A stretch of 64,000 nucleotides of DNA from Blastocladiella emersonii ATCC 22665. Its lineage: Eukaryota > Fungi > Blastocladiomycota. Of this stretch, positions 18,189 through 63,277 are shown in pieces (within the stretch, counting starts at the first letter, position 1; the number at the start of each line of letters is the position of its first letter). The notes under the pieces were generated by a model. The model saw only the letters and a program-made list of their open reading frames with translations. It had not been told where the DNA came from and did no database searches. The stretch lies in assembly GCA_025594325.1 (NCBI GenBank), contig JANHCV010000018.1, positions 62,001 to 126,000 on the forward strand, written 5' to 3'. Position numbers and translations under genes: made by a program.

Positions 18189-18191
18189 AGT

Positions 18192-23040: not shown

Positions 23041-24807
23041 CTATCGAGCTCTTCAACCGCCGGTGGGGCGTGCCGGGCTGTCCGACGTGGCTGGTACGCG
23101 CGCGAGCTTTTTGCGAGGCGGGATTATGTCGAGGGAGAAGGGTTCGGGCGGTGATAAAGCAGGAGAAACGCGAGCTCCGCCGTAGCGGAGCACTCGGGAC
23201 GCTGGTGAAGGGAGCGTAGAGTGAAACGGCGCCATGCGAGCCCTAGGATAGCGGAGAGCGTGACGCGAGCCGCGGGCAGTGGGAAAAAGCGAGAATGGAA
23301 CTCGCACACCGCGATGAGGGGGACACGAGAAAGGCGTGGGTGCGGCGCGGCGAGCGACATGGATGTGAGCAGCGCGGGTGAGCGGTCCGCGGCCGACCAC
23401 GTAGCGCGCGAGTCTGCGGGCCGGTCGTTGCGTGTGAGTTCCATAGCGGGTCGATACATCCAGATTGTCGCTGAGAGCCGTCGGCGGCAGCGCGGGGCGA
23501 CGGGGGAACAAGTCGAGCCCGGCTCGGCGAAACGAGCGCACGGGCTAGGCCAGCCCACGTGAAGCAGCTGTCGCAGAACTCGGACGCGTCGGCGTGGCGC
23601 GTCGCGTAGGTCACGCACGAGGCCCGCCGCGAGAAGTGTGCCGCCGACGGGTCGACGCTCGATTGCGATCGGATTACCATGCCGCAAACGTGAAAGAAGT
23701 CGCCGCGGCGCCGCACCACGGGCAACACGACGTAAAACTGCAATGGAAAGTTCTCGCGGCATGACGGTGAGCCGCCGCGCCGTGGCGCTCCCGGGGATGA
23801 CGAAGACGTTGCCGCAAGTGTCGGTCGGCGTGCTGGAGTGCGAGGAGAGTACGTCGGCGGTCGGACGGGCGACGGTCAGCGGGTGCGGGCGGTGATCAAA
23901 TGGAGCGAGCGAGCGTGAGACCCGACGGGCGCCAGGCGGGCGGCGGCGCGCGCGACGCGGTTTCACACGCCGAGACATCACGCATGCGATCACCCGGCGT
24001 TTGGAACTAAGCCCGCCCACACGACCGAGGCATCGCCGCCCGCTCGGTGCATCGCTGTCGGCGCGTCGGCGGTAGCGGCGGGCGCCGCGTCAGCCCCACG
24101 GTTGCGCCGCGCGACCACCGACCCAGCCCGGCCGCGCGCACCCGGCGTCGCCCGCGGGCGTCGTTGCATCGGGTTTCCATCCGTGTTCGTCGACTCTGCC
24201 GCCCGCCGCGCGCGCATTGCAGCGTGTGTCGGGGGGAAAGCGGGCGGGAATACGAGAGCGGAGCGAGCCGTGGCGCAGCGCGCGCTGCCTGCCCGCGAGC
24301 GACCGACCAGCGCCCCCGTGACCGCCGCGCACTTCCGCCTCCACCTCCCCTTCTCACCCTCGTCTCGGAACCAGACCCGCGCGCCCGCCCCGCCCGACCT
24401 GCCACCTCTCGGCCGCGCGGGCGCTCAGCCGCCGCCGCCGTCACTCCTGTCGGCGCGTGCGTGTCTCGCGCCCGCCGTGTCTCGCACGCGCCGCGACGCG
24501 TCGACCACTGTCTCCCCCTCGGCCCCAGGCCCGGCGCTGCACATCGAATATGCGCGCCGTCTAGCACGGTGCAACCGCCGCCCGCCGCCCGCGGGCCGGC
24601 TGCCCCGCTGCCCCCGCTGCCCCCGCTGCCCCTGCTGCCCCGCTGCCCGCACCCCCTCCGCCCGAGATCGCCGCGCTGCGCTGCCCCCTCGACGCTTTCC
24701 TCAAACCAAAAACCCGTGCGATCCGTTGCATACGAACCATCGAATCATCTGAATCGCGCACCCAATCCCCGTCCGACTGCGCACCCTCCGCGCCGTCAAC
24801 CCCCACC

Positions 24808-27800
24808 ATGTGGTCCCGCAGCGACCCGATCCGCCAGATGCTGGCGATCGCGCTCGCCATGGGCGCATTCATGGTGCTCGCCGTCGGCTCGGCCCTCGGC
24901 CTGCCCATCGCGGCCGCCATGTCCGCCGTGAGCGCTGCCGCCTCGGCCCCGACGTCCCCCGCCCGCCACTCGGCTGCCGCCCCCGTCTCGGTTTCCTTCT
25001 ATTCGTCCGCGAACGCGTCGGCGCTCGTCTCGTCCAACTCGTCGTCCACGCTCGGCATGTGCCGCATCGCGGACAGGCCCTCGCTCGGCTCGTACACGTC
25101 CCACCCGCTCGGCTCGTACACGCCGCACGCCTCGGCGTGGCCGTGGACGTGGATCTCGGACCTCGCCGTCGTCATGCCCGAGACCCGGAACGAGAACACG
25201 CTCTGGCTCGTCGTCAAGGCGCGCGCGCTCTACCACGAGTACGCGCCGTCGGCGGCCGTCGCCCTCAACGCGACCGCTCCCGGCGAGGTCGACGACGCCA
25301 AGTCGACCGGCCCCGTCGACCACCTGCCCGAGGTCGCCGCCGACGTCACCGAGCTGGCCGAGCAGACCAAGTCCGAGACCGAGATTGAGATCCCCGTCAT
25401 CGACCAGGCCGTGACCAACGACACGACCGACGTGGTCGTCGCCACCGCAGCCGCCGCCGAGGCGTCCTCGCCCGCGGCCGTGCAGCCGCACGAGCAGCTC
25501 GACCAGCAGCAGCCCGACCAGCAGCAGCCCGACCAGCAGCTGAAACCGGCGGTCCTGACCACCTCGGACCTGCCCCGCAAACTCGACTCCGTGTCCACGC
25601 TCGACGCGGCGCGCGTCGCGCAGTTCATGGACATGGTCGCCGCCATTCCGCACGGCGCGTGCGTCGGCCGCGAGTTCTCGCTCACGGGCATGGCCATCGC
25701 GGCCGTCATCAACCCGGTCCAGACCGAGCCCGAGCCTGAGCCCGTCATTGTCATCCAGCGCGTCCCGTCGCGCGCGTACATCGGCGGCCAATCGACCGTC
25801 AACGGTAACGCCGACGACATCTCGTTCCTCACGGTGCCGCCCCCGCCGCCCATGGGAGCCGCGCGCGACCTCGCCAAGCTGGCCATGATGCGGGCCCCCG
25901 AGGCCACCTCGGCACCCGGCTCGCCGTACGAGGACGGCGACCGTCCCGTCGACATTGCCACCTCCAGCAACAGCGACGACTCGATGGCCGCGCCGCCGAC
26001 GGCGCAGAAAAAGGAGCAGGAGCAGGAGCACCAGCAGCCGCCCGTCCTGTCGCTCGCCGCCGACCTCGTTGACTTCGTCGACCTCACCCAGATCGGCCAC
26101 CTCCTCGAGCCCATCCACTCGGTCTTGTGCGCCCTGATCGCCCACGTCGCTCCGGCACGGCTTTCGGTCCCGCCCACCTTCCTCGGGATCGTTGGGATCA
26201 TGGCGCTCGCCGTCGGATCCGTCGCCAAGCGCGCCGGCTGCAGCCTGCTGCCGCCCGTCATGCGCTCCGCCGCCGCCGCCCGCCTCGTCGCCGCCGGCCG
26301 TACGATCGCCGAGACGCGTTTCTGCAAGCGGTACGCTTTCTGGTCTCCCGGATTCGGGGGAACCCGTTGCTGACTCTTGGATCTCTATAGCATTCTGGCC
26401 GCGCTGTTTATCATCCCCGGCTCGGTCATCACGATCCTCGCCGCCATGGTCGTTTGCCCTGCTCAGCTCGCGTACCTCGCGGGCAAGCGCGTCGTCGCCT
26501 CCATGTTCTCGCGCCTGATCGCCGGCAAGTACGCCGCGACCTCGCTGATGCACTTGGTTTGCTCATCGGCGCGCGAGACGCGCGCCCGCGTGGCCCTCAC
26601 GGTCGTGTCCGCGAGCCCCCGCATCCACATGGCCGTCGACATCATTGCCCCGCTCGTCTACCTCGGGTGCGGCACGCTCGCCGCCGAGCACCTGTCGCCC
26701 GTCGACCAGCTGTCCGTTTACGTGGCCATCCTCGAGCTGATCTCCGTCTACCACGTCGCGACCGAGGACCGCGTCCAGCCCGCCGTGTCGGTGCCGGAGC
26801 TGGAGCTGGTGCCCGAGATGGAGGAGGCCAAGATGCAGGCGTCGGAGATGCAGGCGTCCATGAAGAAGAAGCAGGCGTACGAGAAGAAGAAGGCGCGCAA
26901 GGCGCGCAACGCGCTCAAGGCCCGCGAGGCCCGCGAGGCGCTCAAGGCGTCCGCCGAGACCAAGTCGTCGTCCATCCTCGCCGATGCCATCCAGGAGCAG
27001 CAGCCCGAGGCCACCCCCGACGCCGTCGACATCCAGCAGCAGCAGCAGCAGCAGCAGCCCGAGGCCACGCCCGACGCCGTCAACATCCAGCAGCAGCAGC
27101 AGCAGCAGCAGCCCGAGGCCACGCCCGACGCCGTCAACATCCAGCAGCAGCAGCAGCAGCAGCCCGAGGCCACGCCCGCCGCCGTCAAGATCCAGCAGCA
27201 AGTCGAGCAGCCCGAGGCCGACGTGACCGACGCCGCCGACTCGCAGTCCGAGACCCAGGTCCAGGCCGTGCTCTCCAAGGAGAAGCTGCAGGTGGCGGAC
27301 GCTGCCGTGCCCGGCAAGCACCGCGTGCCGTACACCAAGTGCGAAATGCGCGAGTACACTCGCACGATCCGCCAGGCGTACCAGCTGCCCAAGTTCCCCT
27401 TCGCCGGCCGCAATGCCAGCGCGCTGGTAGGCGCGTACAAAGTGGTCCAAAAGGCCGGGACCCACCACCTGTATCCTTTGGTCCCGCCGCCGCCCGCCGT
27501 TGTGCCGCCGCCCGACACGCGCCTGCGCATGGACCACGCGTCCAAGGATCTCGAGTTCGTCGCGCGGCTCATGTCCGAGGAGCTCACGCTGTTCCGCGAC
27601 AGCATCCCGAACTGCGATGAGCGCGCCATCTACGTGCCTGTACCCAAGCCGCAGCAGCAGCAGCAGCAGCAGCCCACGACGGTCGGCGCGTCGAGCAACC
27701 CGGTGGCCGCCTCCAAGACCCCGGACTGGACCACGATGATGGACGACGACGACGACGACGCCGAGTCCTCGGAGCTGGTGCAAGACGCGGCGCCCTATGC

Positions 27801-28269
27801 GGCCGCGCCCGAGTCGACGCCCGAGTCGACGCCCGACTGCGAGCCCGTCACGCTGAACGAGTACCCGACGCTCATGACGCTCGACACGGGCAACCCCGAG
27901 CCCCTCATCATCGCGTCGCGCCGCTTCTTGCCGTGGATGACCATGTCCGCGTTCGGCATGGTCAACATCTCGCGACGCAACACGGACGTGGCCAACTCGA
28001 TCTTCGCGCGCAAGGCCAACGCGTACGGCGACAAGATTCCCACGCCATGGAAGTCGTTCGATGAGTTCGGGGTGCGCAAGTTCCCGAGCTCCACCCTGTG
28101 GGACGACGCGCTGCCCGAGGACCGCGACGACCGCGAGGACGAGGAGGAGGAGATCACGATTCCCGAGGAGGACCTCGAGGGGCCGTTCTGCTTCAAGACG
28201 AGCAAGCGCGACCGGCGCAACATGCGCAAGTTCCGCGAGTCCAACCCGGAATACGTGTACCAGTGGTAG
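24808..28269 (+). CDS. Orphan membrane protein with polyQ tandem repeats, 1133 aa, 2 exons (arm copy 1)
   Basis: ORFs 24808-26373 and 26377-28269 join in frame via a 60-bp intron at 26331-26390 (GTACGC...CTGAC...TAG; AAG CG|C ATT). Hydrophobic N-terminal and central segments, K/A-rich helix, repeats of Q(n)PEATPDAV(N/D)I. Confidence 0.75.
27001..27200 (+). repeat. Coding minisatellite with embedded (CAG)n tracts
   Basis: Four units of cagcccgaggccac(g/c)cccg(a/c)cgccgtc(g/a)a(c/g)atc followed by CAG runs of differing length. Confidence 0.9.
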
Positions 28270-29244
28270 TCGGTCCTTGGTCCTCGGACCATCCTCATCA
28301 TCTTCACCTCTTCATCCTCGTCTTTGCCTCCCTCCTCTCGTCTGTTTGGACTTTTTGCGTGTGTGTCGTCGTCGCGTACCCGACTCTCTTTGATCGTGTG
28401 CTCGACTCGCCATCGCGACCCTTTCCTGTTCTCGTACGTTGCCCGCTCTTGACTGCCGCGTCCCGAGGCCCCCAAGGCTCACTCACTTTTGCTCGCCGGC
28501 CGTGTAGTAAAACGACAAAATCCTCCCGATATCCTCTCTGGTGTCGGCCAAAAAACACGCACCCGTAAACCCCGAAAGTACAAAAAAAAAGGAGACGTTC
28601 AACTAGGCGCTCGAGCGCGCCTCATCTACGGCCCGTGGATACGCGTGTACACGCGCATCCGCCGCCGTCACGGCCCCCTCGCGCTGTGTGGCCTCGCTCT
28701 CGCGGCCGCGCTGTTCGCGGTCTAGGCCGAAGGTCAAGGTCCCGCAGACGGCGGGCGGCTCCGGCCAGCTCCGCATGGCTCGACCTCCCCGGCGGCAGCG
28801 GCCATGACCACGCGCAAGCTCGTCGTCGTTTCGGCGGCTCAACGTCCGGTTCCGGTTCCGGCACCGCGCGCGCGTGGTCCTGCGCGATCGCGCACACTCG
28901 TCGCCCATCGCACGCCACCAGCGCTGGCGCAGATTGGCCCGCTCACCCGCTCATCATCGACGGCGCCGCTGCTACGGCCATGGCGCCCAGCGCCGCTACG
29001 GCGCCGACCACGACGGCGGCGGCCTAGGACGATTACCACCTGCTCGCTGCCTCGGCAGCGTCGGCCCTTACCCGCTACACGAACGACTCGCGCGTCATCA
29101 CCGCCATCATCGGACGCACGCCAAGATTGCCTCGTCCTGATCGAGTCGTCGTCGCAGCACCCTGCACCGAGCGCATCTCGCGCACACACACGCGCGCGCT
29201 CGCCGTCCTGCCCGCTCGTACGGCGACGCGCCGGCCGACCAGCC

Positions 29245-31665
29245 GGCCAACCTCACGTCCACGACCCACTGGTACGGACGGCATCGGTGCATTGCCCCAC
29301 TCGCTCCCGCGGCCTCGACCCCCGTACATCCGTACTTTTGTGGGGTCGGGCGAGAGCGGCGGACCCGTGGACGCCGCCAAAGCTCTCGGAGTGGCCCCGA
29401 ACGTCATACGTTCATCTGCACCAATGCCGATCCAGTGGGAAGGTTGTCGTCGATCTCGCGCGCGTCATTCAGCCCCGAGCATGCCGTCGACTTTGTCGAT
29501 CCTCGCCGCCACGCCCAACTACGGCGGCACGCTCGCGCTCGCGCTCTCGGCCAGGTCAACTGACAGCCGCGACCACGAGGGATCGTCTCGCAGCTCATGT
29601 GCCGCATCGACGGCCCCCGCGCCACGCGTACGCCGGGTTCGCGCACCGCCGGTACTACCAGTACCAGCCCCTCGAGTCGCGACCCGCGCCACACCACACC
29701 AAGATCCAGCACGCGCCCGGCGCCCGTCCATCGAGCTCCATGGTCCCGCGCGCTGGCGTCTTCATCACCACCACTGTCGTACCTTTGACCGACATTCCCG
29801 TCGTTGTCATCTGCCGGTTGCGCCCCTTTGTGCGTTCCCGATCTCGTTCATTTCTTTGATTTTGCTCGTTCACGGTCTCGGTACGGATCTCGGGCTGCTG
29901 CTCACCTTGATGGACACGACCACGACCACGGCCAACTGACTCGGTTCGTCGTCTTGCCCGTGTAGAGTGCATTCCGTGCCTCGAATGCCCATGTGTTCTT
30001 CTTTGGAATTTTGGCTCGACTGCGGCCGCACCCAGCTCCTGTACGTCGTCGTACTACGGCAGCCGGGCTGATCCGCCAGCGTCGCGGCGCGCTTTCGCGT
30101 CGTCTCATGCACTTCGGGACCACGCGCTTGCGCCACGACCAACCATTGCTTTCGGTCAACCTCCTGCTCAGCCTGACCCGGGCGAGCCCCCGCGCCGACT
30201 CGCAGCCCAGTACCGCCGCGAGTCCGGCGCTTCTCGCCAGCACGACCCAAGGCCGGGATCACTCTCGTCCACGCTTCATTGACAAGGACGGCATCGGCCC
30301 ACAGCGCTCGCACCGCTCTACTACTTACTACTTCTCGATCGCCCCGCATGCTCACTTCCGCGGGACCTGATGACGATCGCGAGGCGCAGCAGCCGTGGAC
30401 GCTGACTGCCCCTCGGAGCGCGAGCACCGCCCAGATCCAGCACCTGTGCCCGATGCCAAGCCAATGGGGAGTACTTCTTCCTGCTTTGTCGTGTATCCGC
30501 GCGCTTTTCTCAAGGCGCCGGCATCTGCTTCTTCACGTTTTCGTTCACGTACACGTACACGTACACGTACACGTACACGTTCATGTCGATTGCGACCGCG
30601 GGTGTCTCGCGACTCGTAGACCCGCCCATTGGTACGGCTCGCTGACTTGATGCGTCGATGGCCGCAGCTGACCAACCGACCTCGCTTCCATGACTGTAGT
30701 TCTTTCTTTGCTGAGTGCGTCATTGACGTACTCCAGTTCTCGCTCGCTCGCTCGGCGAGACCCGCGCCCAGTATATGCGCGCACACTACGACGACGGCCA
30801 TGGCCACGGTCGCGTCTTTCTCAAGACCCGTCGTCCTGCAGCCACGACGACGACGACGACGACGACCTGTCGCCTCGCGGCCATGACCATCCACAACCTC
30901 GCCACCGCCACCGCGACCTTGCTCGCGACCTCGTCACCTGGTCCCTCGGCCAGTCGCAGTACCAGGAGCAGCTCGCGCGGCTCTCGTCCATCAAGATTCT
31001 CGCGTCGACGTCACACAGCATTACGTCACGCTCGAGATAGATCACTTCCTTCCCGCCCGCTGCAGCTGTACTCGTGCACTTCTTCTCGAGTCAGCCGGCC
31101 CACGCGGTGCGCTACCGTCGGCCTGCGAGCACGGCCTTCCTGCTCGCCGCTCCGACCGTCAAGTCAAGTCCAGTCAAGTCAAGCTCGACTCGATTGCGAT
31201 TTCCAGCACCTCGAGCGCGCGCGTACACGCACGCACACACACACGTCCGGGTCCGACGGTTTCCGAGCGAGGCCACGCCCATGTCAATGGATGGCGAGAG
31301 GTGGGAAACGGCGTCGTCGGCCATGCTTGTGCTCCCAAGCCAGCACGCGACACCTGTTTCCTTCCCGCACCTCTCCGCCGTCCTGGCCTCGCACGGCTTC
31401 TCGTCTCTGCTCCTCATGACCCGCCTGTCCGCCCGCGCGCGCGCGCTGGCGTGCCCGACCAGCAGATCCGCGTGGACTGAGCGAGCCGTGCGCGCGACGC
31501 ACTCGATCACTCGCGTCGCCGCCCTCGACCGCTCGCTCGGCCCCGATCCTCACGCAGCAGCTCGACCGACAACTCGCTCCAGTTATCGAGCTCGAGTTCG
31601 TCCAGCAGCTGTACGCGGTTCAGCTCGTCACGATTAGCTACGACGCCTCCGAGATCCGCGCCCGT
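29245..31665 (+). repeat. Degenerate intron-containing dispersed repeat, copy 2 (inside left arm)
   Basis: Homologous to 12738-14780; contains an (ACACGT)n microsatellite at about 30547-30580 and a (GAC)n tract. Confidence 0.85.
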
Positions 31666-34147
31666 CGTGCCCCCGCCTCGAGCCCGCCGCGCCGCGCAAC
31701 CCAAGCTCCTACCGCGCGGCGCCTGCGGGTTCCATCGCCACCACCACCGCGGCGACTACGGCGACGACGACGACGATGATGACAGGCAATCCCCGACGAG
31801 CACGACCCCAACATGCTCGTTCGCGCGTGTTCGCCTGCTCGCTCTCGTCGCCCGGCACGACACCGGTATCCTCGGCCGTCTTTTGATTCCCGAGCAGCAG
31901 CACCCCCGCGTCCACTCAGGACCCCCCGCGCGTCCGCCGCCACCGCGGCTGCCAGACTGCAGCCGCGGGTCCATCGGCCGCCGGCGCGCCCGCGGGTACT
32001 GCTCCTCGCTGGCTTCCACCGACCATCCCGACCCTTTCAGCCCGCCATCTGCGCGCGCGCGACCCTGCAGTCGACTGACGCCGCCGCCGCCGCCCTCGTG
32101 CTCCGACCGCGGCGGCGCGCTGCTCGGCTCGGTCCGCGCCCAAGGTAGGCGTGGCTGATAAACCTACTACGACTACTCGATTTCTTCCGGCCTCGACCGC
32201 TGAGTCGTGTGCCGAGGACGAAGACGGAGGTGCCCTGCACGCCCATAAGGTCCGTCACGCTGCGTCTCGCTTCGCCACCCGCGGAACGAGTCGTGCACCG
32301 CTGCGTTTCGCTTCGCCATGTCTCTGCGTAGCGATTCGTCGGCCTCCCCGCGGCACATCCTGGTCGGCGCGCGCACCGGGTCGGGTCGCGCGCTGTGTAC
32401 CGCCATTGTGCTGCGGGCTCTGCGGCCCCCCTTTGCAGGCGGGGGCCCAACCCAGCTGCCGCGCATCACGTACGTTTCTCGCATCGCTTGACGGTCTCAG
32501 TCTCTCTCTCGCGTGTGTGTACTGATACTGACAGACCTCGTTCGCGTACTCTCCATCGTGTAGTCAGTGCGCGGCTCCTGGCCCGTACGGCTCGTTTTCG
32601 CGGCTCCGAGAGCCTCGAGCCGGGCGGATGCCTCGCGTCCACCACTTCAAGTCAGTTTGCGGGCGGTCTGCGCGCATCGCCACCGGTCGGGATGCGCGCT
32701 GCGATCGCCGCTGACACGCGGGATGATGATGATGATCAACACATTGTAGTAGCCGTTCGGTATCGTTCGCTTCGGCGCACGCATGCGACCCCGTTCCACG
32801 TTCCACCGTGCTGGGGGTACGCCGTCGCCGTCGACAGGTCCTCTGCGCAGAATCCGGCCACTCAGCTGAGTGTGCCAGGGCCGGCGTAGAGCCGCCTTTC
32901 ACCCTGCGTGATTGGCCGCCTACGAACCGAGACCCGCGGAGAACCGGTTCGACCGGCTGGGGAGTCGGGCAGACGCAGTCCGCGGATCGCACTGTCCCGA
33001 TCGTCACCAGGAGACACCGTTTCTGCTGCAGCTGCGCAGCCGGTGTCTCGCGGCCTCGGCCCGCGTCCCCGTGAGCCCGTCGGCCGTGATCGGGTTGATG
33101 CCGCCCGAGTACTTCAGGCGCAGCGACCAAGCTCTCGACATGTACGTCTCTTTCTCGCCTCGTCGTCGCGCGACGAATCCATGGGCTGACTTGCTCGTTT
33201 TCCGACGTGCGTGTAGGCTCGGTCGGGGTCGCCAGCAGCAGCAGCAGCAGCAGCAGCAACCAGCATCCGGTTTCGACCTCAGCTACTCGCGCGCGGTTCT
33301 TCAGCCTGGTCCCGATCCCGCGCCTCGATTCCGGTGCAGCCCATCAGGTCCTTTGGCGCAACGTACGCTCCTCTTCGTTCCTCGTCGCCTCGACCATTGT
33401 ACTGACTGATCGGTTCGCTCCGACGTGTAGATGTGCGCCACGGCATCATCACGATCAACTCGCCGCCACCCGGTCCCAAGGCGCCCGCGTCTCGCGCGAC
33501 GCGCTGTTCGGCCTCGACTCGACTCGACTCGACGGCGACTCGGCGGTCCAGGAGACCTAGAGCACCTCCCGGAACCAGCCTTCCGGACGTCCGCCCGGCG
33601 TCCATCGACCAAGATTGACCGACACGGTTTGACGCGCGCGGGAGCACGCGCGGAGTGGTCGTTCCTCATGTCGGTCGGTCGAGTCTGTACTGTACCCCTA
33701 GTTTGTTGTAGGCATAGATCCAGTTTTGATTGTATCACTACGCTCTCATGGACCGCGCCAACGAGTCCGTCCTTGTCAAGGCTTCAGCGGCTCGGTTCCT
33801 CTTGACGACGCGTCTCACGGAGCCGCGTTGCGCCATTCACGTTCATGTGAATCGACGACTCTCCGGTGTGGTCAGCAACGAGGCCAGTATTCATTCATCA
33901 AGCATCAAGCATCAAGCAGCGTTCCCGAGAGATCAGCTCCAGGATCATCAGCGGGCTCTCTCCCTCAGCGAGGGCTGCGTTCGGTCGCGCAGCGCCACTC
34001 ACCTGATGCCCGCTGCTGGGCGCCGCCACGAAAGCCGCCGCCGCCACCAAGGCCACACACTCCGAAGCCGAAGGCCGCGCACTCCGAAGGCCGATGGCCC
34101 GCGAAGGTTTCGGCGGCGGTGGTGCGAGCTCCGCATCGTCACGCTAG

Positions 34148-35448
34148 ATGTATCATCCAATGCAGCGAAACACGATCACCACCGCTATGCCACTCCCTGC
34201 CCCGCGGCCGCCCAAGGTCGTCGCCGCCAGCGAGCTCACGCCCGAGCTCTTTGCCCGGTTCCGCAACCGCCGCCCGCTGCTGATCAAGCGCTTCCTCCCG
34301 GCGGCGGCGCTCGCGGCCTGGACGGGGCCCGACCTGTACGGCGCGCCCGAGCGCTCTGGACTCGTACGGCACCTGCTCCCGTTCGGCGCGAGCGGTGCTG
34401 GCAGCGGCGAGGACGGCGAGGACGGCGAGCGGGCCCCGCCGGCGCAGACCGTCTCCGTCGAGGTGCTCCGTGCGCGCGACGGGCGATCCTTTGTCGACGA
34501 CGACCGGTTCACCTCCCGCGAGTCCGTGGACACGCGCGAGCTCGTCGGGCACGTCCTGCTGCGCCAAGCACCTCCCGCCACTGCTGCTGTGACCGGGACC
34601 GGGAACGGGACCGTGACCGTGACCGCGACCGAGACCGAGCGGGGCGGCAGCGAGCATCGCCGCATGTACTACCGCGCCGTGGTCCCGGAACCGCTCCGCG
34701 ACTCGCTGCAGATCGAGGCGCTGCTGCGGCCCAGCTGCCTCACGGTCCCCGACCAGGACCGGATCAACCCGGCGCTCGTCAAGGCGTGGGTCTCGTCGCC
34801 CGGATGCGTCACGCCGTACGACGACTTTTTCTCCCCCACTGCGTTTGGCCGGCCACCCTTCAGTGGGCCCAGCCTAGCCTAGCCTGCCTGCGACCGGCCC
34901 ACTAACAGCGTGCTGACGCGACGATCGCTGCCCCCTGCAACCCTGGAACTAACCACACTGACCACACTGACACCGACAGGCTGCACTACGACCGGTGCCA
35001 CGGGTTCCTGCTCCAGATCATCGGGGCCAAGTACTTCATGCAGTTTGACGCCGAGGACACGGGCAACCTGTACCTGTCCAACTCGCCGAGCCTGCCGTCG
35101 CACGTCAGCCGCGTCCCAAACGTGACGCAGCTGTACGGCATCAGCGCGCGGACGGGCGAGCGCACGGCCGCCTTCACAAACAGCGACCGCGCCAACGGTG
35201 GCGACGGCCACGACGGGACCGCCGAGGCGGTGGCGTGGACGCTGGCCAAGTTCCCGCGGGTGCGCGAGGCCGAGCCGTTCGGCACGCTGCTCGAGCCGGG
35301 CGACGCGCTGTACACGCCGCCCGGGTGGCTGCACGAGGTCACGTCCGTGTCGGGCAGCGTGTCCGTGACGATCCCGTGGGACCAGTCGGACGACGAGTAC
35401 GCCCACATCAAGCCGTACATGACGCCCGCCGCCGCCCTGTCCTCCTAG
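34148..35448 (+). CDS. JmjC-domain (cupin_8; JMJD5/TYW5/HSPBAP1-type) 2-oxoglutarate/Fe(II) oxygenase (arm copy 1)
   Basis: Intron 34816-34979 joins WVSSPGCVTP to LHYDRCHGFLLQIIGAKYF. Downstream LEPGDALYTPPGWLHEV completes the HxD...H iron-binding triad. N-terminal RRPLLIK...W motif present. Confidence 0.88.
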
Positions 35449-35889: not shown

Positions 35890-35947
35890 GACGGACGGGC
35901 GGACGGGTTGATATGATTTACATTGTTTTCACCCTGCTCCGTCAAGC

Positions 35948-51275: not shown

Positions 51276-53757
51276 CTAGCGTGACGATGCGGAGCTCGCA
51301 CCACCGCCGCCGAAACCTTCGCGGGCCATCGGCCTTCGGAGTGCGCGGCCTTCGGCTTCGGAGTGTGTGGCCTTGGTGGCGGCGGCGGCTTTCGTGGCGG
51401 CGCCCAGCAGCGGGCATCAGGTGAGTGGCGCTGCGCGACCGAACGCAGCCCTCGCTGAGGGAGAGAGCCCGCTGATGATCCTGGAGCTGATCTCTCGGGA
51501 ACGCTGCTTGATGCTTGATGCTTGATGAATGAATACTGGCCTCGTTGCTGACCACACCGGAGAGTCGTCGATTCACATGAACGTGAATGGCGCAACGCGG
51601 CTCCGTGAGACGCGTCGTCAAGAGGAACCGAGCCGCTGAAGCCTTGACAAGGACGGACTCGTTGGCGCGGTCCATGAGAGCGTAGTGATACAATCAAAAC
51701 TGGATCTATGCCTACAACAAACTAGGGGTACAGTACAGACTCGACCGACCGACATGAGGAACGACCACTCCGCGCGTGCTCCCGCGCGCGTCAAACCGTG
51801 TCGGTCAATCTTGGTCGATGGACGCCGGGCGGACGTCCGGAAGGCTGGTTCCGGGAGGTGCTCTAGGTCTCCTGGACCGCCGAGTCGCCGTCGAGTCGAG
51901 TCGAGTCGAGGCCGAACAGCGCGTCGCGCGAGACGCGGGCGCCTTGGGACCGGGTGGCGGCGAGTTGATCGTGATGATGCCGTGGCGCACATCTACACGT
52001 CGGAGCGAACCGATCAGTCAGTACAATGGTCGAGGCGACGAGGAACGAAGAGGAGCGTACGTTGCGCCAAAGGACCTGATGGGCTGCACCGGAATCGAGG
52101 CGCGGGATCGGGACCAGGCTGAAGAACCGCGCGCGAGTAGCTGAGGTCGAAACCGGATGCTGGTTGCTGCTGCTGCTGCTGCTGCTGCTGGCGACCCCGA
52201 CCGAGCCTACACGCACGTCGGAAAACGAGCAAGTCAGCCCATGGATTCGTCGCGCGACGACGAGGCGAGAAAGAGACGTACATGTCGAGAGCTTGGTCGC
52301 TGCGCCTGAAGTACTCGGGCGGCATCAACCCGATCACGGCCGACGGGCTCACGGGGACGCGGGCCGAGGCCGCGAGACACCGGCTGCGCAGCTGCAGCAG
52401 AAACGGTGTCTCCTGGTGACGATCGGGACAGTGCGATCCGCGGACTGCGTCTGCCCGACTCCCCAGCCGGTCGAACCGGTTCTCCGCGGGTCTCGGTTCG
52501 TAGGCGGCCAATCACGCAGGGTGAAAGGCGGCTCTACGCCGGCCCTGGCACACTCAGCTGAGTGGCCGGATTCTGCGCAGAGGACCTGTCGACGGCGACG
52601 GCGTACCCCCAGCACGGTGGAACGTGGAACGGGGTCGCATGCGTGCGCCGAAGCGAACGATACCGAACGGCTACTACAATGTGTTGATCATCATCATCAT
52701 CCCGCGTGTCAGCGGCGATCGCAGCGCGCATCCCGACCGGTGGCGATGCGCGCAGACCGCCCGCAAACTGACTTGAAGTGGTGGACGCGAGGCATCCGCC
52801 CGGCTCGAGGCTCTCGGAGCCGCGAAAACGAGCCGTACGGGCCAGGAGCCGCGCACTGACTACACGATGGAGAGTACGCGAACGAGGTCTGTCAGTATCA
52901 GTACACACACGCGAGAGAGAGACTGAGACCGTCAAGCGATGCGAGAAACGTACGTGATGCGCGGCAGCTGGGTTGGGCCCCCGCCTGCAAAGGGGGGCCG
53001 CAGAGCCCGCAGCACAATGGCGGTACACAGCGCGCGACCCGACCCGGTGCGCGCGCCGACCAGGATGTGCCGCGGGGAGGCCGACGAATCGCTACGCAGA
53101 GACATGGCGAAGCGAAACGCAGCGGTGCACGACTCGTTCCGCGGGTGGCGAAGCGAGACGCAGCGTGACGGACCTTATGGGCGTGCAGGGCACCTCCGTC
53201 TTCGTCCTCGGCACACGACTCAGCGGTCGAGGCCGGAAGAAATCGAGTAGTCGTAGTAGGTTTATCAGCCACGCCTACCTTGGGCGCGGACCGAGCCGAG
53301 CAGCGCGCCGCCGCGGTCGGAGCACGAGGGCGGCGGCGGCGGCGTCAGTCGACTGCAGGGTCGCGCGCGCGCAGATGGCGGGCTGAAAGGGTCGGGATGG
53401 TCGGTGGAAGCCAGCGAGGAGCAGTACCCGCGGGCGCGCCGGCGGCCGATGGACCCGCGGCTGCAGTCTGGCAGCCGCGGTGGCGGCGGACGCGCGGGGG
53501 GTCCTGAGTGGACGCGGGGGTGCTGCTGCTCGGGAATCAAAAGACGGCCGAGGATACCGGTGTCGTGCCGGGCGACGAGAGCGAGCAGGCGAACACGCGC
53601 GAACGAGCATGTTGGGGTCGTGCTCGTCGGGGATTGCCTGTCATCATCGTCGTCGTCGTCGCCGTAGTCGCCGCGGTGGTGGTGGCGATGGAACCCGCAG
53701 GCGCCGCGCGGTAGGAGCTTGGGTTGCGCGGCGCGGCGGGCTCGAGGCGGGGGCACG

Positions 53758-56178
53758 ACGGGCGCGGATCTCGGAGGCGTCGTAGCTAATCGTGACGAGC
53801 TGAACCGCGTACAGCTGCTGGACGAACTCGAGCTCGATAACTGGAGCGAGTTGTCGGTCGAGCTGCTGCGTGAGGATCGGGGCCGAGCGAGCGGTCGAGG
53901 GCGGCGACGCGAGTGATCGAGTGCGTCGCGCGCACGGCTCGCTCAGTCCACGCGGATCTGCTGGTCGGGCACGCCAGCGCGCGCGCGCGGGCGGACAGGC
54001 GGGTCATGAGGAGCAGAGACGAGAAGCCGTGCGAGGCCAGGACGGCGGAGAGGTGCGGGAAGGAAACAGGTGTCGCGTGCTGGCTTGGGAGCACAAGCAT
54101 GGCCGACGACGCCGTTTCCCACCTCTCGCCATCCATTGACATGGGCGTGGCCTCGCTCGGAAACCGTCGGACCCGGACGTGTGTGTGTGCGTGCGTGTAC
54201 GCGCGCGCTCGAGGTGCTGGAAATCGCAATCGAGTCGAGCTTGACTTGACTGGACTTGACTTGACGGTCGGAGCGGCGAGCAGGAAGGCCGTGCTCGCAG
54301 GCCGACGGTAGCGCACCGCGTGGGCCGGCTGACTCGAGAAGAAGTGCACGAGTACAGCTGCAGCGGGCGGGAAGGAAGTGATCTATCTCGAGCGTGACGT
54401 AATGCTGTGTGACGTCGACGCGAGAATCTTGATGGACGAGAGCCGCGCGAGCTGCTCCTGGTACTGCGACTGGCCGAGGGACCAGGTGACGAGGTCGCGA
54501 GCAAGGTCGCGGTGGCGGTGGCGAGGTTGTGGATGGTCATGGCCGCGAGGCGACAGGTCGTCGTCGTCGTCGTCGTCGTGGCTGCAGGACGACGGGTCTT
54601 GAGAAAGACGCGACCGTGGCCATGGCCGTCGTCGTAGTGTGCGCGCATATACTGGGCGCGGGTCTCGCCGAGCGAGCGAGCGAGAACTGGAGTACGTCAA
54701 TGACGCACTCAGCAAAGAAAGAACTACAGTCATGGAAGCGAGGTCGGTTGGTCAGCTGCGGCCATCGACGCATCAAGTCAGCGAGCCGTACCAATGGGCG
54801 GGTCTACGAGTCGCGAGACACCCGCGGTCGCAATCGACATGAACGTGTACGTGTACGTGTACGTGTACGTGTACGTGAACGAAAACGTGAAGAAGCAGAT
54901 GCCGGCGCCTTGAGAAAAGCGCGCGGATACACGACAAAGCAGGAAGAAGTACTCCCCATTGGCTTGGCATCGGGCACAGGTGCTGGATCTGGGCGGTGCT
55001 CGCGCTCCGAGGGGCAGTCAGCGTCCACGGCTGCTGCGCCTCGCGATCGTCATCAGGTCCCGCGGAAGTGAGCATGCGGGGCGATCGAGAAGTAGTAAGT
55101 AGTAGAGCGGTGCGAGCGCTGTGGGCCGATGCCGTCCTTGTCAATGAAGCGTGGACGAGAGTGATCCCGGCCTTGGGTCGTGCTGGCGAGAAGCGCCGGA
55201 CTCGCGGCGGTACTGGGCTGCGAGTCGGCGCGGGGGCTCGCCCGGGTCAGGCTGAGCAGGAGGTTGACCGAAAGCAATGGTTGGTCGTGGCGCAAGCGCG
55301 TGGTCCCGAAGTGCATGAGACGACGCGAAAGCGCGCCGCGACGCTGGCGGATCAGCCCGGCTGCCGTAGTACGACGACGTACAGGAGCTGGGTGCGGCCG
55401 CAGTCGAGCCAAAATTCCAAAGAAGAACACATGGGCATTCGAGGCACGGAATGCACTCTACACGGGCAAGACGACGAACCGAGTCAGTTGGCCGTGGTCG
55501 TGGTCGTGTCCATCAAGGTGAGCAGCAGCCCGAGATCCGTACCGAGACCGTGAACGAGCAAAATCAAAGAAATGAACGAGATCGGGAACGCACAAAGGGG
55601 CGCAACCGGCAGATGACAACGACGGGAATGTCGGTCAAAGGTACGACAGTGGTGGTGATGAAGACGCCAGCGCGCGGGACCATGGAGCTCGATGGACGGG
55701 CGCCGGGCGCGTGCTGGATCTTGGTGTGGTGTGGCGCGGGTCGCGACTCGAGGGGCTGGTACTGGTAGTACCGGCGGTGCGCGAACCCGGCGTACGCGTG
55801 GCGCGGGGGCCGTCGATGCGGCACATGAGCTGCGAGACGATCCCTCGTGGTCGCGGCTGTCAGTTGACCTGGCCGAGAGCGCGAGCGCGAGCGTGCCGCC
55901 GTAGTTGGGCGTGGCGGCGAGGATCGACAAAGTCGACGGCATGCTCGGGGCTGAATGACGCGCGCGAGATCGACGACAACCTTCCCACTGGATCGGCATT
56001 GGTGCAGATGAACGTATGACGTTCGGGGCCACTCCGAGAGCTTTGGCGGCGTCCACGGGTCCGCCGCTCTCGCCCGACCCCACAAAAGTACGGATGTACG
56101 GGGGTCGAGGCCGCGGGAGCGAGTGGGGCAATGCACCGATGCCGTCCGTACCAGTGGGTCGTGGACGTGAGGTTGGCC
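53758..56178 (-). repeat. Degenerate intron-containing dispersed repeat, copy 3 (inside right arm)
   Basis: Mirror of 29245-31665. Confidence 0.85.
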
Positions 56179-57153
56179 GGCTGGTCGGCCGGCGCGTCGC
56201 CGTACGAGCGGGCAGGACGGCGAGCGCGCGCGTGTGTGTGCGCGAGATGCGCTCGGTGCAGGGTGCTGCGACGACGACTCGATCAGGACGAGGCAATCTT
56301 GGCGTGCGTCCGATGATGGCGGTGATGACGCGCGAGTCGTTCGTGTAGCGGGTAAGGGCCGACGCTGCCGAGGCAGCGAGCAGGTGGTAATCGTCCTAGG
56401 CCGCCGCCGTCGTGGTCGGCGCCGTAGCGGCGCTGGGCGCCATGGCCGTAGCAGCGGCGCCGTCGATGATGAGCGGGTGAGCGGGCCAATCTGCGCCAGC
56501 GCTGGTGGCGTGCGATGGGCGACGAGTGTGCGCGATCGCGCAGGACCACGCGCGCGCGGTGCCGGAACCGGAACCGGACGTTGAGCCGCCGAAACGACGA
56601 CGAGCTTGCGCGTGGTCATGGCCGCTGCCGCCGGGGAGGTCGAGCCATGCGGAGCTGGCCGGAGCCGCCCGCCGTCTGCGGGACCTTGACCTTCGGCCTA
56701 GACCGCGAACAGCGCGGCCGCGAGAGCGAGGCCACACAGCGCGAGGGGGCCGTGACGGCGGCGGATGCGCGTGTACACGCGTATCCACGGGCCGTAGATG
56801 AGGCGCGCTCGAGCGCCTAGTTGAACGTCTCCTTTTTTTTTGTACTTTCGGGGTTTACGGGTGCGTGTTTTTTGGCCGACACCAGAGAGGATATCGGGAG
56901 GATTTTGTCGTTTTACTACACGGCCGGCGAGCAAAAGTGAGTGAGCCTTGGGGGCCTCGGGACGCGGCAGTCAAGAGCGGGCAACGTACGAGAACAGGAA
57001 AGGGTCGCGATGGCGAGTCGAGCACACGATCAAAGAGAGTCGGGTACGCGACGACGACACACACGCAAAAAGTCCAAACAGACGAGAGGAGGGAGGCAAA
57101 GACGAGGATGAAGAGGTGAAGATGATGAGGATGGTCCGAGGACCAAGGACCGA

Positions 57154-60100
57154 CTACCACTGGTACACGTATTCCGGGTTGGACTCGCGGAACTTGCGCA
57201 TGTTGCGCCGGTCGCGCTTGCTCGTCTTGAAGCAGAACGGCCCCTCGAGGTCCTCCTCGGGAATCGTGATCTCCTCCTCCTCGTCCTCGCGGTCGTCGCG
57301 GTCCTCGGGCAGCGCGTCGTCCCACAGGGTGGAGCTCGGGAACTTGCGCACCCCGAACTCATCGAACGACTTCCATGGCGTGGGAATCTTGTCGCCGTAC
57401 GCGTTGGCCTTGCGCGCGAAGATCGAGTTGGCCACGTCCGTGTTGCGTCGCGAGATGTTGACCATGCCGAACGCGGACATGGTCATCCACGGCAAGAAGC
57501 GGCGCGACGCGATGATGAGGGGCTCGGGGTTGCCCGTGTCGAGCGTCATGAGCGTCGGGTACTCGTTCAGCGTGACGGGCTCGCAGTCGGGCGTCGACTC
57601 GGGCGTCGACTCGGGCGCGGCCGCATAGGGCGCCGCGTCTTGCACCAGCTCCGAGGACTCGGCGTCGTCGTCGTCGTCGTCCATCATCGTGGTCCAGTCC
57701 GGGGTCTTGGAGGCGGCCACCGGGTTGCTCGACGCGCCGACCGTCGTGGGCTGCTGCTGCTGCTGCTGCTGCGGCTTGGGTACAGGCACGTAGATGGCGC
57801 GCTCATCGCAGTTCGGGATGCTGTCGCGGAACAGCGTGAGCTCCTCGGACATGAGCCGCGCGACGAACTCGAGATCCTTGGACGCGTGGTCCATGCGCAG
57901 GCGCGTGTCGGGCGGCGGCACAACGGCGGGCGGCGGCGGGACCAAAGGATACAGGTGGTGGGTCCCGGCCTTTTGGACCACTTTGTACGCGCCTACCAGC
58001 GCGCTGGCATTGCGGCCGGCGAAGGGGAACTTGGGCAGCTGGTACGCCTGGCGGATCGTGCGAGTGTACTCGCGCATTTCGCACTTGGTGTACGGCACGC
58101 GGTGCTTGCCGGGCACGGCAGCGTCCGCCACCTGCAGCTTCTCCTTGGAGAGCACGGCCTGGACCTGGGTCTCGGACTGCGAGTCGGCGGCGTCGGTCAC
58201 GTCGGCCTCGGGCTGCTCGACTTGCTGCTGGATCTTGACGGCGGCGGGCGTGGCCTCGGGCTGCTGCTGCTGCTGCTGCTGGATGTTGATGGCGTCGGGC
58301 GTGGCCTCGGGCTGCTGCTGCTGCTGCTGCTGCTGGATGTTGACGGCGTCGGGCGTGGCCTCGGGCTGCTGCTGCTGCTGCTGCTGCTGGATGTCGACGG
58401 CGTCGGGGGTGGCCTCGGGCTGCTGCTCCTGGATGGCATCGGCGAGGATGGACGACGACTTGGTCTCGGCGGACGCCTTGAGCGCCTCGCGGGCCTCGCG
58501 GGCCTTGAGCGCGTTGCGCGCCTTGCGCGCCTTCTTCTTCTCGTACGCCTGCTTCTTCTTCATGGACGCCTGCATCTCCGACGCCTGCATCTTGGCCTCC
58601 TCCATCTCGGGCACCAGCTCCAGCTCCGGCACCGACACGGCGGGCTGGACGCGGTCCTCGGTCGCGACGTGGTAGACGGAGATCAGCTCGAGGATGGCCA
58701 CGTAAACGGACAGCTGGTCGACGGGCGACAGGTGCTCGGCGGCGAGCGTGCCGCACCCGAGGTAGACGAGCGGGGCAATGATGTCGACGGCCATGTGGAT
58801 GCGGGGGCTCGCGGACACGACCGTGAGGGCCACGCGGGCGCGCGTCTCGCGCGCCGATGAGCAAACCAAGTGCATCAGCGAGGTCGCGGCGTACTTGCCG
58901 GCGATCAGGCGCGAGAACATGGAGGCGACGACGCGCTTGCCCGCGAGGTACGCGAGCTGAGCAGGGCAAACGACCATGGCGGCGAGGATCGTGATGACCG
59001 AGCCGGGGATGATAAACAGCGCGGCCAGAATGCTATAGAGATCCAAGAGTCAGCAACGGGTTCCCCCGAATCCGGGAGACCAGAAAGCGTACCGCTTGCA
59101 GAAACGCGTCTCGGCGATCGTACGGCCGGCGGCGACGAGGCGGGCGGCGGCGGCGGAGCGCATGACGGGCGGCAGCAGGCTGCAGCCGGCGCGCTTGGCG
59201 ACGGATCCGACGGCGAGCGCCATGATCCCAACGATCCCGAGGAAGGTGGGCGGGACCGAAAGCCGTGCCGGAGCGACGTGGGCGATCAGGGCGCACAAGA
59301 CCGAGTGGATGGGCTCGAGGAGGTGGCCGATCTGGGTGAGGTCGACGAAGTCAACGAGGTCGGCGGCGAGCGACAGGACGGGCGGCTGCTGGTGCTCCTG
59401 CTCCTGCTCCTTTTTCTGCGCCGTCGGCGGCGCGGCCATCGAGTCGTCGCTGTTGCTGGAGGTGGCAATGTCGACGGGACGGTCGCCGTCCTCGTACGGC
59501 GAGCCGGGTGCCGAGGTGGCCTCGGGGGCCCGCATCATGGCCAGCTTGGCGAGGTCGCGCGCGGCTCCCATGGGCGGCGGGGGCGGCACCGTGAGGAACG
59601 AGATGTCGTCGGCGTTACCGTTGACGGTCGATTGGCCGCCGATGTACGCGCGCGACGGGACGCGCTGGATGACAATGACGGGCTCAGGCTCGGGCTCGGT
59701 CTGGACCGGGTTGATGACGGCCGCGATGGCCATGCCCGTGAGCGAGAACTCGCGGCCGACGCACGCGCCGTGCGGAATGGCGGCGACCATGTCCATGAAC
59801 TGCGCGACGCGCGCCGCGTCGAGCGTGGACACGGAGTCGAGTTTGCGGGGCAGGTCCGAGGTGGTCAGGACCGCCGGTTTCAGCTGCTGGTCGGGCTGCT
59901 GCTGGTCGGGCTGCTGCTGGTCGAGCTGCTCGTGCGGCTGCACGGCCGCGGGCGAGGACGCCTCGGCGGCGGCTGCGGTGGCGACGACCACGTCGGTCGT
60001 GTCGTTGGTCACGGCCTGGTCGATGACGGGGATCTCAATCTCGGTCTCGGACTTGGTCTGCTCGGCCAGCTCGGTGACGTCGGCGGCGACCTCGGGCAGG

Positions 60101-60615
60101 TGGTCGACGGGGCCGGTCGACTTGGCGTCGTCGACCTCGCCGGGAGCGGTCGCGTTGAGGGCGACGGCCGCCGACGGCGCGTACTCGTGGTAGAGCGCGC
60201 GCGCCTTGACGACGAGCCAGAGCGTGTTCTCGTTCCGGGTCTCGGGCATGACGACGGCGAGGTCCGAGATCCACGTCCACGGCCACGCCGAGGCGTGCGG
60301 CGTGTACGAGCCGAGCGGGTGGGACGTGTACGAGCCGAGCGAGGGCCTGTCCGCGATGCGGCACATGCCGAGCGTGGACGACGAGTTGGACGAGACGAGC
60401 GCCGACGCGTTCGCGGACGAATAGAAGGAAACCGAGACGGGGGCGGCAGCCGAGTGGCGGGCGGGGGACGTCGGGGCCGAGGCGGCAGCGCTCACGGCGG
60501 ACATGGCGGCCGCGATGGGCAGGCCGAGGGCCGAGCCGACGGCGAGCACCATGAATGCGCCCATGGCGAGCGCGATCGCCAGCATCTGGCGGATCGGGTC
60601 GCTGCGGGACCACAT
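57154..60615 (-). CDS. Orphan polyQ-repeat membrane protein (arm copy 2)
   Basis: Mirror of 24808-28269 with intron 59033-59092. One V>I change in the third repeat (DAVNI to DAINI). Confidence 0.75.
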
Positions 60616-63277
60616 GGTGGGGGTTGACGGCGCGGAGGGTGCGCAGTCGGACGGGGATTGGGTGCGCGATTCAGATGATTCGATGGTTCGTATGCAACGG
60701 ATCGCACGGGTTTTTGGTTTGAGGAAAGCGTCGAGGGGGCAGCGCAGCGCGGCGATCTCGGGCGGAGGGGGTGCGGGCAGCGGGGCAGCAGGGGCAGCGG
60801 GGGCAGCGGGGGCAGCGGGGCAGCCGGCCCGCGGGCGGCGGGCGGCGGTTGCACCGTGCTAGACGGCGCGCATATTCGATGTGCAGCGCCGGGCCTGGGG
60901 CCGAGGGGGAGACAGTGGTCGACGCGTCGCGGCGCGTGCGAGACACGGCGGGCGCGAGACACGCACGCGCCGACAGGAGTGACGGCGGCGGCGGCTGAGC
61001 GCCCGCGCGGCCGAGAGGTGGCAGGTCGGGCGGGGCGGGCGCGCGGGTCTGGTTCCGAGACGAGGGTGAGAAGGGGAGGTGGAGGCGGAAGTGCGCGGCG
61101 GTCACGGGGGCGCTGGTCGGTCGCTCGCGGGCAGGCAGCGCGCGCTGCGCCACGGCTCGCTCCGCTCTCGTATTCCCGCCCGCTTTCCCCCCGACACACG
61201 CTGCAATGCGCGCGCGGCGGGCGGCAGAGTCGACGAACACGGATGGAAACCCGATGCAACGACGCCCGCGGGCGACGCCGGGTGCGCGCGGCCGGGCTGG
61301 GTCGGTGGTCGCGCGGCGCAACCGTGGGGCTGACGCGGCGCCCGCCGCTACCGCCGACGCGCCGACAGCGATGCACCGAGCGGGCGGCGATGCCTCGGTC
61401 GTGTGGGCGGGCTTAGTTCCAAACGCCGGGTGATCGCATGCGTGATGTCTCGGCGTGTGAAACCGCGTCGCGCGCGCCGCCGCCCGCCTGGCGCCCGTCG
61501 GGTCTCACGCTCGCTCGCTCCATTTGATCACCGCCCGCACCCGCTGACCGTCGCCCGTCCGACCGCCGACGTACTCTCCTCGCACTCCAGCACGCCGACC
61601 GACACTTGCGGCAACGTCTTCGTCATCCCCGGGAGCGCCACGGCGCGGCGGCTCACCGTCATGCCGCGAGAACTTTCCATTGCAGTTTTACGTCGTGTTG
61701 CCCGTGGTGCGGCGCCGCGGCGACTTCTTTCACGTTTGCGGCATGGTAATCCGATCGCAATCGAGCGTCGACCCGTCGGCGGCACACTTCTCGCGGCGGG
61801 CCTCGTGCGTGACCTACGCGACGCGCCACGCCGACGCGTCCGAGTTCTGCGACAGCTGCTTCACGTGGGCTGGCCTAGCCCGTGCGCTCGTTTCGCCGAG
61901 CCGGGCTCGACTTGTTCCCCCGTCGCCCCGCGCTGCCGCCGACGGCTCTCAGCGACAATCTGGATGTATCGACCCGCTATGGAACTCACACGCAACGACC
62001 GGCCCGCAGACTGCGCGCTACGTGGTCGGCCGCGGACCGGCCACCCGCGCTGCTCACGCTCCTCTCGCTGTTCGAACCGCGCCCGACGTTTTCGCCGGGC
62101 CCCCTCTCATCTCATCCGCGCGCTCCGGCAACCGCCCCACGCAGTCTGGCCAGCCCGGTGCTGCTTTTCGGTCTTGGCGAGCGGCGGGTCGGCCCTCTCG
62201 CTGTCGACTCGCTTCATCTCGCTACATGCGCTTTCGCCAACGGCTTACCTACGTGCGGGTCGCTCGCTCACAACCGCTTCCCCGCGAAACTCGCTCCCCC
62301 AAGTCGGCGACCTTCTATCTTGCCCCTTTCCCGCTCGCTGTCCGAACCCTACTCTTGCCCGCGCCGCCGAGTCCTTGCGCCCTTTCGCCCTCTCCAACCC
62401 TTTGGAATCTTGCCACGGTGGCAGGCGTCACGTCCCATGCTACTTTATATATCGTCCCGAAAACCTCCTCCCCTCGACGAGCTGTCGCTTTCGCATCAAG
62501 CCACGCGAACACGTCCACTTTGCCGAGCAGCTCGCTCCTTCGCGGTCACTGATGCCTCTTGTACCGCACGAACGGACCAGCAGCGGGTCACGGCTCTGCG
62601 CTGAGGGCCGCTCGAGCAGCCCTGCCTTGCTTGCACTGCTCGAGTGCCCGGCCCCGGACGCTATCCAGGTTCGCCAGCGCTCGCGCACTTTCGCCCGCGA
62701 CCACGGCATCGGCCACTCCGTGGAGTGCGTTGAAAATTGTGCTTCCTTGACCTTCGGCACGGCCACGGCAATGTTCTCGATGCTGCTCATGCCGTCCCAA
62801 CCTCCTCGTCTACGGAATGCTTCCCCTCCACAGCTTTGCGACGATCGCCCAAACATACCGCGACCCATCGAAACATGCACCGCCAGATCTGCCGAGCTGA
62901 CGGCCGCGGCGCGCGTCGGCATCTCCGCATCGTGGTACTTGCCGCTCATCACGGACGAGTGTGCCTGCTGCGTTACGTTTCCACGCTGCCCATCAATTTC
63001 TCCGGCCTATCGCGTGTGATCTCGCAGCTCTCGCAACCACCCCTGAACACCTCTCGCTGTAGCCTGCGGATAAAACTCGCCCGCGCATGTCAACTGATGT
63101 TGTCGTGTTGGACTCGCTCGTCGCGACGGCGGGCGCGGCGGTCGCCTCGATCAAGACATTTTTGAAGAATGAGGACCTTCCCGACGACCGCATCAAGATG
63201 TACTCATCATTTATAGAAACACGAGTAGAAGGACAAAAGAGCAGCGCGCGGTACGGATGGGGAGCAAACAAACACTC

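Follow-up and report, generated by a model that had tools for sequence, protein, structure and literature searches.

A 12.3-kb Gene-Bearing Inverted Repeat with a Mosaic Spacer and a Third Arm Copy in the Genome of Blastocladiella emersonii

Introduction

Among the closest described counterparts of the locus reported here is the 24-kb flip/flop region of Saccharomyces cerevisiae chromosome XIV, a block of 15 genes between the arms of a 4-kb inverted repeat that is being homogenised continually (Salzberg et al., 2022; PMC9731477). The arms of this repeat evolve in concert, and inversion is a passive by-product, stable on laboratory timescales; both orientations and conservation across species have been documented (PMC9731477). 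In primate and mouse sex-chromosome palindromes, arm identity is attributed to arm-to-arm conversion, the age of the palindromes being shown by cross-species orthologs (PMC8327919; PMC8600007; bioRxiv 10.1101/800185). Gene blocks flanked by long inverted repeats are known, too, from mating-type switching in Ogataea polymorpha (PMC5720833) and Komagataella phaffii. Here we describe a large inverted repeat in the zoosporic fungus Blastocladiella emersonii ATCC 22665, located in a stretch of 64,000 nucleotides (the window; positions 62,001-126,000 of contig JANHCV010000018.1, hereafter contig 18) of the genome assembly GCA_025594325.1.

Like the yeast region, the B. emersonii locus is a fungal nuclear locus in which gene-bearing, near-identical inverted arms surround ordinary genes (15 in yeast, six here). 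However, its arms are three times longer and have a third family member on another contig, the arm genes are an orphan gene and a JmjC gene instead of the sporulation genes of yeast, and the structure is known from one genome. With the sex-chromosome palindromes it shares gene-bearing arms that exceed 10 kb, are >99.9% identical, and surround a unique spacer; as in those, the arms may resemble each other more closely than expected from their apparent age. Unlike in those palindromes, the age is inferred here only from faded edges and a switch in tree topology, and there is no sex-chromosome or germline-expression context. Considered in isolation, this is an ordinary palindrome. What it adds in detail is a third copy, a spacer of mosaic composition, and a different grouping of the copies at the edge and in the core.

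Results and Discussion

Structure of the Inverted Repeat

Positions in the contig record (213,278 bp) equal window positions plus 62,000, in the same orientation. In direct comparison, the two arms (23411-35666 and 49757-62012) are exact reverse complements over 12,256 bp, with a constant coordinate sum of 85423, save for one substitution (G at 27133, A at 58290). No indels separate them, which corresponds to 99.992% identity. A sequence-only reading of the window had described a near-perfect repeat of this length with a single substitution and no net indel, and both the direct comparison and BLAST confirmed it. Between the arms lies a spacer of 14,090 bp (35667-49756). GC content is 66% across the window, which is free of ambiguous letters (N). 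With these values the locus belongs to the large palindromes, defined by arms >8-10 kb, >99% identity, and a unique spacer.

The inner boundary of the repeat is sharp, and the outer one is gradual. Self-BLAST of the window carried the arm match outward to 23353/62069; this extension includes a few substitutions and, at 23410, an indel of 1 bp. At this edge the left and right arms differ at 3 sites in 46 nt, and then at ~30% of the sites over the next 50 nt (p~0.002).

Physical Presence of the Repeat in the Genome

The assembly was produced from PacBio HiFi reads (mean length 10.5 kb, ~191x coverage) with LJA, followed by duplicate purging and Pilon polishing with 65-nt Illumina reads (PMC9730499). 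An artefact, with one arm written twice or with two loci mis-joined through the long repeat, had to be considered, since the 12.3-kb arms are longer than the average HiFi read, purging and polishing were part of the assembly, and a third arm copy could confuse repeat resolution. The read evidence consisted of k=31 Logan contigs from three sequencing runs (X1, X2, and X3), examined in detail over 21500-27499, a region that includes the left outer junction. Both outer junctions and the right inner junction were found in contigs of all three runs, among them lower-depth runs with different coverage behaviour; for the right inner junction, both sampled 31-mers occurred in X1, X2, and X3.

The unit of depth was calibrated on the end of the prominin-like gene (21500-22234), where a depth of 353-411 for three copies gives ~138 per copy; the calibration contigs carry the exact letters of the two 98% copies on contig 6. 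In X1, word depth was 119 in the left-flank contig (22205-23440) and 362-375 in the arm contigs. A further X1 contig, with a 1-bp deletion at 23410, had a depth of 252; its loose end at 23365 corresponds to 62058 onward, and hence it represents the right-flank type of junction. By depth, the left-flank junction is thus present in about one copy, the right-flank type in about two, and the arm in about three. The assembly predicts precisely this 1:2:3 ratio, because the arm copy on contig 2 (see below) has a right-flank type junction. The minor letters seen in X2 at positions 23533, 23536, and 23547 correspond exactly to the contig 2 variants. The sequence-only reading had named a combined arm depth of one copy and a lack of junction-supporting reads as signs of an artefact. 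Neither was observed: of the ~3 units of arm depth one belongs to contig 2, leaving two for the window, and contigs crossing both outer junctions and the right inner junction were present in the runs.

Several points weigh against this reading. The support for the left inner junction is indirect, 0.99 of the sampled words over 33000-39000 occurring in X1. Logan contigs pop bubbles and cannot confirm the true identity of the arms (known contig 2 variants are not shown in X1), and polishing with 65-nt reads could have wiped out a few real differences between them. Finally, total X1 depth at 23410 is 501.6, which is ~130 above the sum of the junction contigs (119 + 252), an excess that is absent in X3. 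A genome with both inner junctions and a continuous spacer necessarily has the inverted repeat. The repeat is a genuine, nuclear inverted segmental duplication, and an assembly artefact is highly improbable given the arm depth and the junction depths of one and two units. Two other candidates were rejected: that of a third copy missing from the assembly (an arm lost to purging, or a heterozygous or diploid strain) was dropped once the contig 2 copy with its right-flank junction had been found, and that of contig 18 being a haplotig is contradicted by the depth arithmetic.

Third Arm Copy and Relationships within the Family

The third copy was found through the 90%-identity cluster of the orphan protein encoded in the arms. 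It lies on contig JANHCV010000002.1 (contig 2; locus L009), between a ribosomal L13 gene and Utp11, and comprises ~11 kb, i.e., 10.3 kb of the arm and 739 bp of the right flank, matching the window from 62808 down to 51810. The arms thus belong to a three-member near-identical family, with two members on contig 18 and one on contig 2. Divergence of the contig 2 copy from the arms, given in left-arm coordinates, is 0.14% in the shared right flank, 0.33% over 23411-28900, and 0.18% over 29101-33000, rising to 6.5% over 33001-33613 and to 22-26% from there to about 33855. Beyond this point the contig 2 copy has no similarity to the arms and no JmjC gene.

The grouping of the three copies switches along their length: in the core the right arm goes with the left arm, and at the outer edge it goes with the contig 2 copy, which has the right-arm letter wherever the left arm deviates. 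As the contig 2 copy carries the flank of the right arm, the left arm is the derived copy. Synteny with Catenaria around the JmjC ortholog, sought to polarise the arms, was not found. At the sole site of difference between the arms the contig 2 copy has G, in agreement with the left arm; therefore it is the right arm that carries the change. The difference is non-synonymous (D/N) and falls within the 54-bp polyglutamine (polyQ) tandem array of the orphan gene.

Mosaic Spacer

According to the annotation, the spacer contains six genes and one gene fragment (Table 1). Its first part, block S1 (35664-40733, ~5.07 kb, with the junction letters), corresponds to positions 6180-11250 of the contig 2 locus L001, with six substitutions and one indel, and the remainder forms block S2. 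S1 starts exactly at the left inner junction, with a CGT overlap, and the carboxylesterase gene is cut here and intact on contig 2; hence the left inner junction is derived and of the microhomology type. On contig 2, the sequence past the opposite end of S1 holds a collinear, decayed relic of the DUF1308 gene with a stop and a deletion (L001 5699-6134). This makes the contig 2 and contig 18 loci old paralogs, within which S1 stands out as an island of recent identity. The same relic weakens the candidate explanation of S1 as a simple recent copy from contig 2. The paralogy involves the end region of contig 2 (2.72-2.79 Mb).

The sequence-only reading had counted eight ordinary single-copy genes in the spacer. 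The number has to be reduced to six and a fragment, and the genes of 35664-40733 are duplicated on contig 2; for S2, no near-identical copy was seen in the loci fetched. Two of the gene models deserve a comment. For the class C G protein-coupled receptor (GPCR), the annotation has only a ligand-binding fragment of 260 aa (46654-48141); a 7tm_3 domain is encoded further downstream (48149-48643), and the model looks truncated. The DUF1746 model comprises 464 aa over 3.5 kb (37090-40726), and segments with coding score, together with an Sfi1-like Pfam match, cover most of this span; it may miss exons or fuse two genes.

Origin and Maintenance of the Palindrome

It appears reasonably probable that the palindrome is an inverted segmental duplication from an old three-copy family, its cores kept near-identical by gene conversion, and that inversion is passive only. 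Divergence between the arms (1 difference in 12,256 bp) is 17-fold lower than that between S1 and its contig 2 counterpart (7 differences in 5,071 bp; Fisher p=0.001). Near-identity fades to about 25-35% divergence at three boundaries: where the repeat ends on its outer side, where the contig 2 copy ends on its inner side, and at the end of S1. Together with the topology switch between edge and core, this fading points to old paralogs homogenised by gene conversion. The family would be old, with about 25-35% divergence wherever homology persists outside the identical tracts. The outer end of the left arm abuts unrelated DNA, and its inner end was joined by the 3-bp microhomology to the paralogous IPK and DUF1746 block, cutting the carboxylesterase gene. 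The cores would be kept near-identical by ectopic and arm-to-arm conversion, presumably most efficient between the two nearby inverted arms, and arm-arm recombination could flip the 14-kb spacer as a passive by-product. On these sequence comparisons, gene conversion probably maintains the identity of the arms.

Arm identity of this degree would also result from a very recent duplication, and the ~95 nt of homology at the edge could represent a short similarity that already existed and served for the join; both points count against conversion. They belong to a serious, though rather unlikely, rival explanation, in which a very young one-step inverted duplication needed no conversion: a template switch during replication or repair would have copied the right arm once, recently, and placed the copy in inverted orientation between the left flank and S1. 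The sharp inner junction with its 3-bp microhomology, as in microhomology-mediated repair, agrees with this, and so do the single difference in 12,256 bp, the derived state of the left arm, and the surroundings, a mosaic of copied pieces (the prominin copy from contig 6, S1 and the arm family common with contig 2, gene fragments further left). However, about 95 nt of diverged but significant homology continue past the identical tract at the outer end, which is unexpected for a fresh breakpoint and would have to be taken as pre-existing similarity. Within the ~250 kb examined, the patch does not recur as a dispersed repeat, and similar fading occurs at two other boundaries of the family. As to the initial event, origin-dependent inverted-repeat amplification (ODIRA) yields an inverted triplication at one locus, with the middle copy inverted and junctions at short inverted repeats. 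Unlike in ODIRA, the third B. emersonii copy lies in a context of its own on contig 2, between the L13 gene and Utp11, and the spacer measures 14 kb; an inverted triplication of the ODIRA type was therefore rejected. In more general terms, the inverted copy, its 3-bp microhomology junction with unrelated sequence, and the mosaic of copied segments resemble microhomology-mediated replicative rearrangements, such as microhomology-mediated break-induced replication (MMBIR), fork stalling and template switching (FoSTeS), and ODIRA (PMC4689423; PMC10766186).

Orientation of the Spacer

As at the O. polymorpha and K. phaffii mating-type loci, a block of about 14-19 kb lies between inverted repeat arms and could be inverted by recombination, and long near-identical inverted arms around a gene block would suit a programmed flip-flop switch, in which regulated inversion of the 14-kb block changes expression. 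Several observations speak against such a switch. Genes of the MAT, HMG, alpha-box, and homeodomain families were absent from the spacer and arms, in accordance with the sequence-only reading, which had seen no HMG or homeodomain gene and considered a mating-type role unsupported. The JmjC gene ends inside the arm, at both inner junctions the flanking genes are convergent, with their 3' ends towards each other, and no gene or promoter crosses an arm boundary, so that inversion swaps no promoter. No recombinase was found in the arms, spacer, or flanks, and the assembler resolved a single path. The locus lies in the middle of the contig (85-124 kb of 213 kb), no telomere-type repeat was detected in the window, and nothing places the locus by a centromere or telomere. 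In Ogataea and Komagataella, MAT genes lie beside the repeats, the position relative to centromere or telomere depends on orientation, and switching is induced by starvation; none of this was seen at the B. emersonii locus. An Ogataea-type switch fails here because its defining gene content is missing, and we regard a programmed switch as hardly credible. Inversion of the spacer by crossover between the arms could occur, but it would be neutral for gene structure, there being no gene, promoter, or silencing boundary to make orientation matter. The proposal of a conversion-maintained or flip-flop segment, made from the sequence alone, has thus fared unevenly: conversion is indirectly supported by the 17-fold lower divergence, the fading edges, and the tree switch, and nothing in the anatomy of the locus suggests a switch.

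Gene Content of the Arms and Coordinates of the Features

Each arm carries an orphan gene and a JmjC/Cupin_8 gene, separated by a gene-less stretch. The orphan protein has transmembrane-like segments. No Pfam family was recognised in it and no homolog was found among 1.84 billion representatives, its Atlas matches being at noise level. All gene copies are intact: the three orphan proteins differ by 1-2 residues, and the two JmjC genes are identical. The duplication thus doubles the orphan gene (triples it, if contig 2 is counted) and the JmjC hydroxylase-like gene. About 2.8 kb of the gene-less stretch has an old paralog upstream of the repeat, conserved equally in all six frames; on this ground a hidden gene in the 5.9 kb was rejected, and the relic at 12526-14883 is probably non-coding, as no reading frame is favoured. 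The stretch and the relic may represent a non-coding RNA locus or the relic of an element. Rfam and tRNA scans over 19-64 kb found nothing.

Pfam families of transposases and recombinases were absent from the arms, spacer, and flanks, and no direct repeat (target-site duplication) was found at the arm ends. A transposon or composite element was rejected accordingly; Tigger-like Atlas scores of 0.73-0.84 are below noise and lack Pfam support. The annotation and Pfam content bear out the earlier description of the arms as gene-bearing and not transposon-like. An apparent interstitial telomere repeat within the arm was likewise rejected, since what matches the beginning of contig 6 is a CAG run.

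Table 1. Features of the inverted repeat, its spacer, and its flanks (window coordinates).
Feature	Position	Strand	Remarks
Old diverged paralog of the gene-less middle of the arm	12526-14883	+	64-76% identity; direct orientation to left arm, 10 kb upstream; probably non-coding
Prominin-like gene segment	19388-22288	+	98% copy of the two copies in the contig 6 inverted repeat; three copies in total
Unique left flank (FL)	22289-23315		Single-copy depth
Left outer fade zone	23316-23410		~70%, then 93% identity to right flank edge; left arm is the odd one out against right arm and contig 2 copy
Left arm	23411-35666	+	Derived copy
Orphan membrane/polyQ gene H9P43_010152	24808-28269	+	1133 aa; 60-nt intron 26331-26390
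Gene-less arm stretch	28270-34186		5.9 kb; no annotated gene, low coding score
JmjC/Cupin_8 gene H9P43_010160	34187-35448	+	365 aa; stop 220 nt inside arm
Left inner junction	35664-35666		3-bp microhomology CGT between arm end and contig 2-type block
Carboxylesterase coding sequence, end	35664-35889	+	Last 226 nt, cut by arm; intact 504-aa gene at contig 2 locus
Block S1	35667-40733		99.86% identical to contig 2
IPK	35948-36913	-	In S1
DUF1746/Sfi1-like	37210-40726	+	In S1
Block S2	40734-49756		No near-identical copy seen in loci fetched
DUF1308	40872-42698	+	In S2
Bot1p	42927-43794	+	In S2
Mitochondrial-type ribosomal S5	44992-45822	-	In S2
Class C GPCR	about 46390-49240	+	In S2
Right arm	49757-62012	-	Outer flank common with contig 2 copy
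JmjC gene, mirror copy	49975-51236	-	
Orphan gene, mirror copy H9P43_010161	57154-60615	-	
Right flank segment	62013-62808		Common with contig 2 copy over 739 bp, with 1 substitution; ends sharply at 62808; outer fade zone has its right half in the first ~95 nt

Left Flank and the Contig 6 Repeat

Upstream of the unique left flank, the annotation of 16952-22205 comprises a 256-aa fragment of an MLH1-like HATPase and a model of 927 aa with a faint Sec10_N match and the Prominin family. This annotation fits the patchwork of captured gene pieces that had been proposed for the left flank from the sequence alone. The start of contig 6 (JANHCV010000006.1, about 4.8-33.8 kb; loci L006 and L007) is itself an inverted repeat, in which arms of 10.1 kb or more, 99.98% identical, surround a spacer of about 8.8 kb; its arms carry prominin-like, Tcp11, and INTS2 genes. 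The prominin-like copy of the window runs 200 nt past the boundary of the contig 6 repeat on the L007 side.

Implications

The evidence at the level of reads means that large inverted repeats in the published HiFi assembly of a model zoosporic fungus are real; the term "inverted repeat" appears nowhere in the full text of the B. emersonii genome paper (PMC9730499). For users of the annotation it follows that the seemingly single-copy IPK, DUF1746, and orphan genes have near-identical paralogs, which short-read mapping and knock-out experiments will confuse. The islands of 5-12 kb at 99.7-99.99% identity within a paralogy that is ~30% diverged suggest, from the sequences compared, strong concerted evolution between dispersed copies. 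A much bolder possibility, which we consider improbable, is that inverted duplication and long-tract ectopic homogenisation are unusually active in B. emersonii, so that its genome would hold a dozen or more flippable, near-identical, gene-bearing palindromes and the present locus would exist as two isomers in culture. If true, this would be a nuclear analogue of the flip-flop of plastid inverted repeats and an undescribed feature of an early-diverging fungal genome.

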